From Saccostrea cucullata (Eukaryota), in the NCBI RefSeq assembly GCF_032062105.1, contig NW_026940030.1:310001-374000 (forward strand): 64,000 bases of DNA. Direction: 5' to 3'. The translations under genes and the position numbers were made by a program. Shown piece after piece: positions 38,366 to 39,354 of the stretch. How positions within the stretch are numbered: position 1 is the first letter of the stretch; each line of letters starts with the position of its first letter. The notes beneath the pieces were generated by a model. The model had not been told where the DNA came from. It did not search any database and saw nothing but the letters and a program-made list of their open reading frames with translations.

Positions 38366-38794
38366 GAGCCACACCCACAAATGGAGACCACGTGGTGCTA
38401 CTGTAACTTTTCTCAAACCAAGGCTAAATTGTGGATAAACTGACAGTGCTTTCATTACATGTGCTTAATAATTCAGACTTTTGTGAGTTCATTGTGTCTG
38501 TATGTTGCGAGTTCCGTCTTTAAATAGTCTGTTTTCTACAGAACTAGTGAATCAGAGACACCTAGTCTGAATGGTGCCCAGTTGGCAAGTTATATTAGAT
38601 ATTCCAAATTTGATCTGCTATTTATGTTCTTAAGAATTTGTGATAAACTTTATTCAAAAACCAAAGCCCTTTATCATTCTTTCTGTTTATATAAAACAAT
38701 ATATTTTATGCACCTACTTCAATTATGATGATAAGTTTATTTTGCAATACAATTTCTCACAGCAAATTATTGCCCTGTATTTTGATCTTTGTTA

Positions 38795-39173
38795 TGTGGA
38801 CGTCAGATGGGTTTGGAGGGCCAAAGACATTTAAGGAGGGAAGAATGTGGCAGTCAGCTGGGTTTCGATCGCCGGTGGCCAGATAGCTCAGTTGGTAGAG
38901 CACCTGACCGGAGTTTCAGGGGGCCCAGGTCTGAATCGGGATCCTGGTCCGCTGCATTTTCTCCCCGCCCGTTACGTTTGGTGCTGTGCCATGCCCTGGA
39001 ATTGACAGTTCAAAGACCTGCCAGGGATGAGCCTGGGTTGGGGTCTTTGGAGGGCCAAAGACCTTTAAGGAGGGAGGAATGTGGCGGTCAGCTGTGTTTT
39101 ATCGCCGGTGGCTAGATAGCTCAGTTGGTCGAATCACGGTCTTGTCCCCTGCATTTTCTCCTCTCCCGTTACA
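38795..39173 (+). mobile_element. TRIM (miniature LTR retrotransposon), tandem form, with tRNA-derived sequence inside its LTRs
   Basis: 4-bp TSD GTTA (38791-38794 / 39174-39177). LTR stub 38795-38814, PPT 38833-38845, LTR 38846-38976 (TG...CG), PBS TGGTGCTGTG at 38979, PPT AAGGAGGGAGGAA 39067-39079, LTR 39080-39173 (TG...CA). Confidence 0.85.
38877..38950 (+). pseudogene. tRNA-like cassette within the TRIM LTR (not a functional tRNA)
   Basis: A box TAGCTCAGTTGGTAGAGC, stem CCTGA/TCAGG with an 8-nt loop, degenerate B box GGTCTGAATC. Confidence 0.75.
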
Positions 39174-39354
39174 GTTACAATATATCTTAAATTGACATAT
39201 CTTAAATTAACAAAGGGTAGAAGATGACAGTTTACATATGTAGAAAAGCCACTATTAGAAATGATGGTTAAGTATAAAAAAAAATTGTTTGTTTGCAGTA
39301 TGCTGCCTAAAGACTTGCATAAAAAGCACCGAATCAGAGCTATTGTTCTTTTAA

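Follow-up and report, generated by a model that had tools for sequence, protein, structure and literature searches.

An old Helenus-1_SaGl insertion in Saccostrea cucullata and a candidate Ty3/Gypsy helper for its family

Introduction

What kind of element occupies positions 38795–39173 of the window (that is, the whole stretch of 64,000 nucleotides of Saccostrea cucullata DNA that was analysed), how might it have been transcribed and mobilized, and is it new? The initial annotation had read it as a miniature LTR retrotransposon with a tRNA-derived RNA polymerase III (Pol III) promoter in its LTRs, had stated that tRNA-bearing TRIMs go by the name Helenus and occur in bivalves, and had flagged possible novelty for checking. 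The statement is correct according to Kojima 2024 (Biology 13:119, PMC10886601), in which Helenus comprises TRIMs with tRNA-derived sequence in their LTRs and forms one group of TRIMp3 (that is, TRIMs transcribed by RNA polymerase III); the novelty is absent, Helenus-1_SaGl having been published in 2024. On the evidence of sequence comparison, the window element is a real and correctly read member of this already published family.

Taken as a whole, the reading that we favour is that of an old, inactive Helenus-1_SaGl insertion, a TRIMp3 whose LTRs carry a tRNA-derived Pol III promoter and whose family would move through a cycle of Pol III transcription and Gypsy help, and we put its probability at roughly 85%. 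It was established in 2024 that a tRNA-type Pol III promoter can be acquired by LTR retrotransposons and not by LINE-dependent SINEs alone, and the window adds no new kind of element; the additions made here (a named candidate helper for bivalve Helenus, chimeras joined in the primer-binding site (PBS), and copied stretches of tRNA-His) are all modest, and make Pol III transcription and mobilization in trans easier to test in oysters.

Structure and decay of the window copy

Read directly from the sequence, the element begins with TG, ends with CA and is flanked immediately outside by a perfect 4-bp duplication, GTTA (38791–38794 and 39174–39177, with no strand assigned); all further parts lie on the plus strand. 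The duplication is adjoined by an LTR stub, the first 19 bp of an LTR (38795–38813), which starts TGTGG and matches the LTR start of copy L013 at 15 of 19 positions, and which is followed by the 3′-terminal 32 bp of a first internal region (38814–38845; BLAST aligns internal positions 70–103 with 38812–38845 at 91% identity) ending in the polypurine tract (PPT) AAGGAGGGAAGAA (38833–38845). The full LTR of 131 bp (38846–38976) is 90% identical to a young LTR, by BLAST and by alignment, and ends ACG where other copies end ACA. Its tRNA-like module (38877–38950; Rfam tRNA match at 38882–38949) contains an A box, TAGCTCAGTTGGTAGAGC (38884–38901), an anticodon-type stem, CCTGA/TCAGG (38903–38907 and 38916–38920), and a degenerate (that is, mutated) B box, GGTCTGAATCG (38928–38938); 4 nt past the module lies a TTTT run (38957–38960), a putative Pol III terminator and R/U5 boundary.

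The internal region of 103 bp (38977–39079) starts with a TT spacer, ends in AAGGAGGGAGGAA and matches published Helenus-1_SaGl at 100 of 103 positions, differing at the other three. Within it lie the PBS TGGTGCTGTG (38979–38988), a first predicted hairpin (38994–39026), the tRNA-His box CCTGGGTTG (39032–39040), a second predicted hairpin (39042–39063) and the PPT (39067–39079). The 3′ LTR, delimited by alignment with other LTRs, comprises 94 bp (39080–39173) and ends in CA; in the alignment it carries a 35-bp deletion that runs from the end of the A box to the start of the B box of its tRNA-like module. A direct-repeat search finds the repeats of the window element to be 93–94% identical, and the parts agree with BLAST against a young copy. 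Every component listed in the initial annotation (LTR stub, PPT, 131-bp LTR, PBS, interior of about 100 bp, PPT, LTR ending in CA and GTTA duplication) is thus present, the A box, paired stem and degenerate B box lie where it had placed them, and the PBS is, as it had claimed, one change from the complement of the tRNA-His 3′ end, namely a C-to-T change that sits at a CpG. The sole open reading frame at the element (38789–39115) has a TTG start, runs across the repeats and was regarded as spurious. Around the element the DNA is AT-rich (33% G+C), and neither a convincing open reading frame nor a second copy lies nearby.

As judged from its sequence, this copy is an old and inactive insertion, which had arrived as one unit within its GTTA duplication. 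Between its two LTRs, 15 of 94 aligned positions (16%) are mismatched, and each LTR differs from a young one by about 9%. The copy still has an intact box A, but a mutated box B in one LTR and a partly deleted module in the other; the Rfam tRNA model scores 25.3 bits (E 0.014), under its gathering score of 29, and ARAGORN finds no tRNA on the window copy, such that the module is seen by Rfam only, below threshold. About 180 bp have been lost on the 5′ side, and the breakpoints have TT in common. We read the LTR stub as the probable remnant of a three-LTR form, such as those at L005–L009, after this deletion of about 180 bp. In the simplest history, a three-LTR form with one duplication would have inserted as such or have arisen by unequal recombination, and would then have decayed.

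The family across the genome

A search of the whole genome with a 382-bp stretch gave 1356 first-look candidates, of which 85 are scored matches. With up to two mismatches allowed, the places matched number 535 for an LTR-specific 28-mer and 390 for an internal one, against none for the reversed-pattern control of either. The genome holds several hundred copies of the family, and this multiplicity, together with the 4-bp duplications that the copies share, means that the element is not a product of chance. The usual form consists of a 129-bp LTR, a 103-bp internal region and a second 129-bp LTR, and three-LTR forms are frequent among the 30 loci considered. Perfect 4-bp duplications flank about 20 of the 24 full copies examined, three-LTR forms with a single duplication included.

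Six diagnostic motifs were counted across 61 LTRs and 36 internal regions. The LTRs are exactly 129 bp long in 55 of 61 cases, start with TGTGG in 60 and end with TTACA in 58; the PBS reads TGGTGCCGTG in 26 of the 36 internal regions and the PPT AAGGAGGGAGGAA in 33, both exactly at the LTR borders. The organization LTR–PBS–PPT–LTR, the TG...CA ends and the 4-bp duplications that the initial annotation proposed to check in other copies therefore hold across a multi-copy family, and the observations that it had named as contrary (SINE-type tails or a single copy) were not made, there being no such tail and several hundred copies. These comparisons were made copy against copy or against published text rather than against a consensus built here. 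Within elements, paired LTRs differ by 0–8.6% in a sample biased to well-preserved copies, and five pairs are identical, which indicates that some insertions are recent.

The internal region is predicted to fold into two hairpins (z-score −2.81), and the hairpin before the PPT shows a compensatory G–C to C–G change between Helenus-1 and a Helenus-2-like copy. At one locus, a Helenus-2-like tandem array on the minus strand (L002:886–1345) lies head to head with a Helenus-1 array (L002:1377–2126) whose four LTRs are all identical, such that the two neighbours form a local cluster of TRIM arrays.

Relation to published Helenus and other TRIMs

According to PMC10886601, pteriomorph bivalves have 51 Helenus families, animal members have 4-bp duplications, and bivalve members use tRNA-His as one of their primers; the supplement of that paper gives, for Helenus-1_SaGl from the oyster Saccostrea glomerata, an LTR of 129, an internal region of 103, a total of 361 and a duplication of 4. 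Compared by eye with the published sequences, copy L013 agrees at 359 of 361 positions, the LTR and the internal region accounting for one mismatch each. This near-identity points to S. glomerata, or a species very close to it, as the source of the genome. The features that define Helenus are all found here: two short LTRs around a short non-coding interior with a total below about 1.3 kb, a tRNA-complementary PBS after the 5′ LTR, a PPT before the 3′ LTR, a 4-bp duplication and, at the level of the family, box A (TRGCY...YGG) and box B (GGTTC) inside the LTR. No family-level difference separates Helenus-1_SaGl from the family of the window, of which the window copy is a degraded derivative of the three-LTR form.

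Among the closest known systems are the sister bivalve families Helenus-2C_CGi and Helenus-2_SaGl, which are likewise primed by tRNA-His and which share with Helenus-1 the termini TGT...GTTACA, the A and B boxes, a PPT ending in GGAGGAA and the pre-PPT hairpin; their LTRs diverge by about 25%, and the differences from Helenus-1 concern the first 30 bp of the LTR, which are U3-like, and the central part of the internal region. Plant Cassandra TRIMs, which the initial annotation had named for their 5S sequence in the LTRs, in agreement with what PMC10886601 says of them, resemble Helenus in that both LTRs of a non-coding TRIM carry the promoter of a small-RNA gene and in forming tandem multi-LTR arrays (PMC10886601 and PMC7215508). 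The module of Cassandra is derived from 5S rather than from tRNA and the element resides in plants; the two are of independent origin. A further bivalve TRIM, biv-TRIM (Satovic et al. 2019, PMC6934838), also occurs as solo repeats and tandem forms, yet has no canonical PBS and contains a conserved segment, TGATCCCAAAGGAC, whereas Helenus-1 has a clear tRNA-His PBS and is without that segment; on these two grounds biv-TRIM was rejected as the identity of the window element.

The tRNA-like module of young copies

In young copies, the module (LTR positions 31–103) forms a full cloverleaf; in L010 it scores 58.8 and 52.6 bits over positions 1–71 of the Rfam tRNA model. The motif GGTTCGAATCC is intact in 51 of the 61 LTRs and the A box in 48, and CATTTTC, with the TTTT run 4 nt after the module, is found in 58. 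A Helenus-2-like LTR, 25% divergent, keeps the module, the TTTT run and the last 20 bp or so, whereas its first 30 bp have diverged. Within Helenus-1, the major-allele frequency is 0.99 in the A and B boxes versus 0.98 in the rest of the LTR; the conservation of the boxes within the family gives no support either way, as expected for young neutral copies.

As a separate observation, the U3-like LTR positions 9–30 (38854–38876 in the window) hold a partial second T-arm-like stretch, GCCGGGTTCGATCGCCGGT. Compared over 19 positions with the T arm of the main module, it agrees at 16, which gives the LTR the look of some 1.3 tRNA-like units.

tRNA-His as the probable primer

The family PBS is complementary to the last seven bases of tRNA-His(GTG) plus CCA. 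The tRNA-His(GTG) genes of the genome end ...CCTGGTCACGGCA (...GAATCCTGGTCACGGCA), followed by GTGG and not by CCA. Retroviral plus-strand synthesis copies the PBS anew from the primer. A PBS with a match to 17–19 nt of tRNA-His, as would be expected from such recopying, is present in several Helenus-1 copies, and these copies are the sequence evidence that points to tRNA-His as the primer of Helenus-1.

Longer copied stretches occur in related elements: a Helenus-2-like copy with the duplication AACT (L069:1371–1690) carries 30 nt of tRNA-His complement, two LTR ends lie head to head around 37 nt of tRNA-His with a non-encoded CCA at another locus (L074:1380–1800), and a member of another LTR family (L068:1490–1540) carries 34 nt of tRNA-His complement. 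All three look like read-through into the primer or aberrant strand transfer. Given that one of the copied stretches includes a CCA that is not encoded, mature tRNA-His appears to be the primer in Helenus-2-like elements and in this other LTR family.

The PBS may be only one part of the contact with the primer. Up to 200 nt from the PBS, we find extra boxes of 9–14 nt that are complementary to the D arm, anticodon stem or T stem of tRNA-His; boxes of at least 9 nt are present in 11 of 19 distinct tRNA-His-PBS contexts (L031–L060), and reversed or shuffled controls reach at most 8 nt. The box (A)CCTGGGTTG is common to Helenus-1 and the Gypsy candidate described below, and it is exactly at this box that the copied tRNA stretch of L069 joins the internal region. 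These sequence matches suggest a multi-part primer binding; extra tRNA-pairing boxes are used by Ty1 and Ty3 of yeast.

A candidate Ty3/Gypsy helper

The initial annotation had envisaged an autonomous element that uses the same primer, makes a 4-bp duplication and mobilizes the TRIM in trans; this idea is supported by a concrete candidate. A 17-nt tRNA-His PBS occurs at 283 places in the genome, and of the first 30, which were inspected, five belong to one family with the LTR end CGGTTACA. This Gypsy family is about 8.8 kb long, with LTRs of 1227 bp (TGTAG...CGGTTACA), a 19-nt tRNA-His PBS and a 4-bp duplication. One copy (L041 plus L063) lies on the minus strand at G000:C1610:~120560–129350, and the others are represented by L035/L061, L048/L064, L037/L062 and L044/L065; across the five, LTR pairs are 95.4–99.8% identical, the best pair reaching 99.76%. 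A single copy retains a gag-like open reading frame of 335 aa and a pol frame of 1308 aa, the other copies being interrupted. On the latter frame, Pfam reports Asp_protease_2, RVT_1, RT_RNaseH, Integrase_H2C2, rve and Integrase_p58_C in this order (that is, protease, reverse transcriptase, RNase H and the zinc-binding and core domains of integrase), which together with the LTRs, PBS and PPT is the composition of an autonomous Ty3/Gypsy element; the gag has weak matches to capsid-type Pfam families (SCAN and PNMA).

The borders of the two elements are alike. The junction of PPT and LTR start reads TTTAAGGGGGGAGGAA|TGTAGTGGT in the Gypsy element and TTTAAGGAGGGAGGAA|TGTGGCGGT in Helenus-1, and the LTR ends are ...CGGTTACA|TAAG in the former, with TAAG on both flanks, and ...CCGTTACA in the latter. 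The two therefore agree in PBS, in PPT (near-identical), in both termini (similar) and in duplication length; beyond PBS, PPT and termini, BLAST with a word size of 7 finds no likeness between them. The other tRNA-His families inspected end otherwise (for example, ...ACGTTCA, ...AACCA and ...AGTCA), and the LTR–PBS junction of the Gypsy family occurs at 29 places in the genome. We consider the family at G000:C1610 the best candidate helper among the first 30 of the 283 places, and another family could fit equally well or better. For a Helenus partner, PMC10886601 could point only to PBS similarity; a partner that shares PPT and LTR termini besides the PBS, and footprints of tRNA-His copying, are absent from its main text and from the passages of the supplement cited.

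The two families also occur joined. At L066:2045–2618 (G000:C3871), the last 116 bp or so of a Gypsy LTR, the spacer and the PBS lead into Helenus-1 sequence (internal region, LTR, internal region and LTR). The two parts meet in the shared PBS, and the same junction is present at G000:C8614 and G000:C12088; two of the three places have common flanks. Template switching between co-packaged RNAs would explain these chimeras. They could also have arisen by DNA recombination, and the three loci may be one event assembled several times.

Proposed life cycle and alternative readings

In the cycle that we propose, TFIIIC and Pol III would use the A and B boxes of the module (LTR positions 31–103), with transcription starting near LTR position 31, and the TTTT run, a weak one, would let some transcripts through in the 5′ LTR and stop them in the 3′ LTR. 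A full-length template would need such read-through in the 5′ LTR. The LTR would accordingly be divided into U3 (about 1–30), R (about 31–111, some 80 nt made up by the module) and a U5 of about 18 nt at its end. The RNA would then be packaged in particles of the autonomous Ty3/Gypsy element, host tRNA-His would prime reverse transcription at the PBS, the PPT would prime the plus strand, and the Gypsy integrase would insert the cDNA with a 4-bp duplication. The Pol III start site, the dependence on Pol III and the read-through of TTTT are steps that we infer from the arrangement of the LTR.

The strongest alternative, which we nevertheless consider improbable, retains a Helenus-type TRIM and attributes the template RNA to Pol II or to read-through from a neighbouring gene; the module would then be a passenger (that is, left over from a SINE that had inserted into an ancestral LTR) or, alternatively, a TFIIIC-bound chromatin mark or a processing signal for RNase P/Z. 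A TTTT run right after the module would indeed be expected to stop a large share of Pol III transcripts within the 5′ LTR, short of the PBS, and PMC10886601 itself states that Pol III transcription of Helenus lacks validation. Against the first point, the run may be a weak or leaky stop, given that most of the six host tRNA-His genes (a small sample) are followed by T5–T7 runs, with T4 coming first at one or two. Moreover, Helenus-1 and a Helenus-2-like copy both retain the full cloverleaf and its canonical A and B boxes despite diverged U3-like parts and 25% divergence overall, and PMC10886601 reports that the module is also kept across phyla (section 3.5) and that Cassandra, the 5S analogue, has transcripts from its Pol III promoter. 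With 30 bp of LTR upstream of the module, a Pol II promoter would hardly fit. Transcription by Pol III from the module is the reading that we retain as the more probable.

A more specific extension of the Pol III cycle combines several of these features and is put forward tentatively, as possible rather than likely: Helenus-1 and its Gypsy helper would share a two-part tRNA-His site (the PBS plus (A)CCTGGGTTG, the latter complementary to the 5′ strand of the T stem and to the variable loop), the leaky TTTT run would set the R/U5 border so that the module serves as the R repeat for strand transfer, and extra boxes would be present in most tRNA-His-primed LTR families of the genome.

Two other readings have very little left to recommend them. 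A tandem dimer of a tRNA-derived, LINE-mobilized SINE, or a local tandem duplication, in place of an LTR element would account for the tRNA-like head and for the units repeated in tandem at several loci, but it is excluded by exact TG...CA ends in the absence of an A-rich or simple-repeat tail, a duplication fixed at 4 bp in about 20 of 24 copies, a tRNA-His PBS and a PPT exactly at the LTR borders (26 and 33 of 36 internal regions) and three-LTR forms with a single flanking duplication, as expected from unequal LTR–LTR recombination. A satellite was likewise rejected on structure.

That the module is a working tRNA gene spread by the element is hardly credible either: its full-length Rfam tRNA matches lie well over threshold, but ARAGORN reports it in 58 of 61 LTRs as ‘tRNA-???’ with a four-base anticodon in an 8-nt anticodon loop, a loop that rules out a working tRNA, and PMC10886601 deems a functional tRNA from Helenus unlikely. 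The notion that the four-base anticodon might aid the gag–pol frameshift of the helper was also discarded, the pol frame being −1 relative to gag whereas quadruplet decoding gives +1. An Rfam tRNA search of the genome yields about 101,000 first-look candidates, which points to many tRNA-like repeats (for example, SINEs and Helenus LTRs), and the Helenus class accounts for part of this flood of tRNA-like matches in bivalve genomes.
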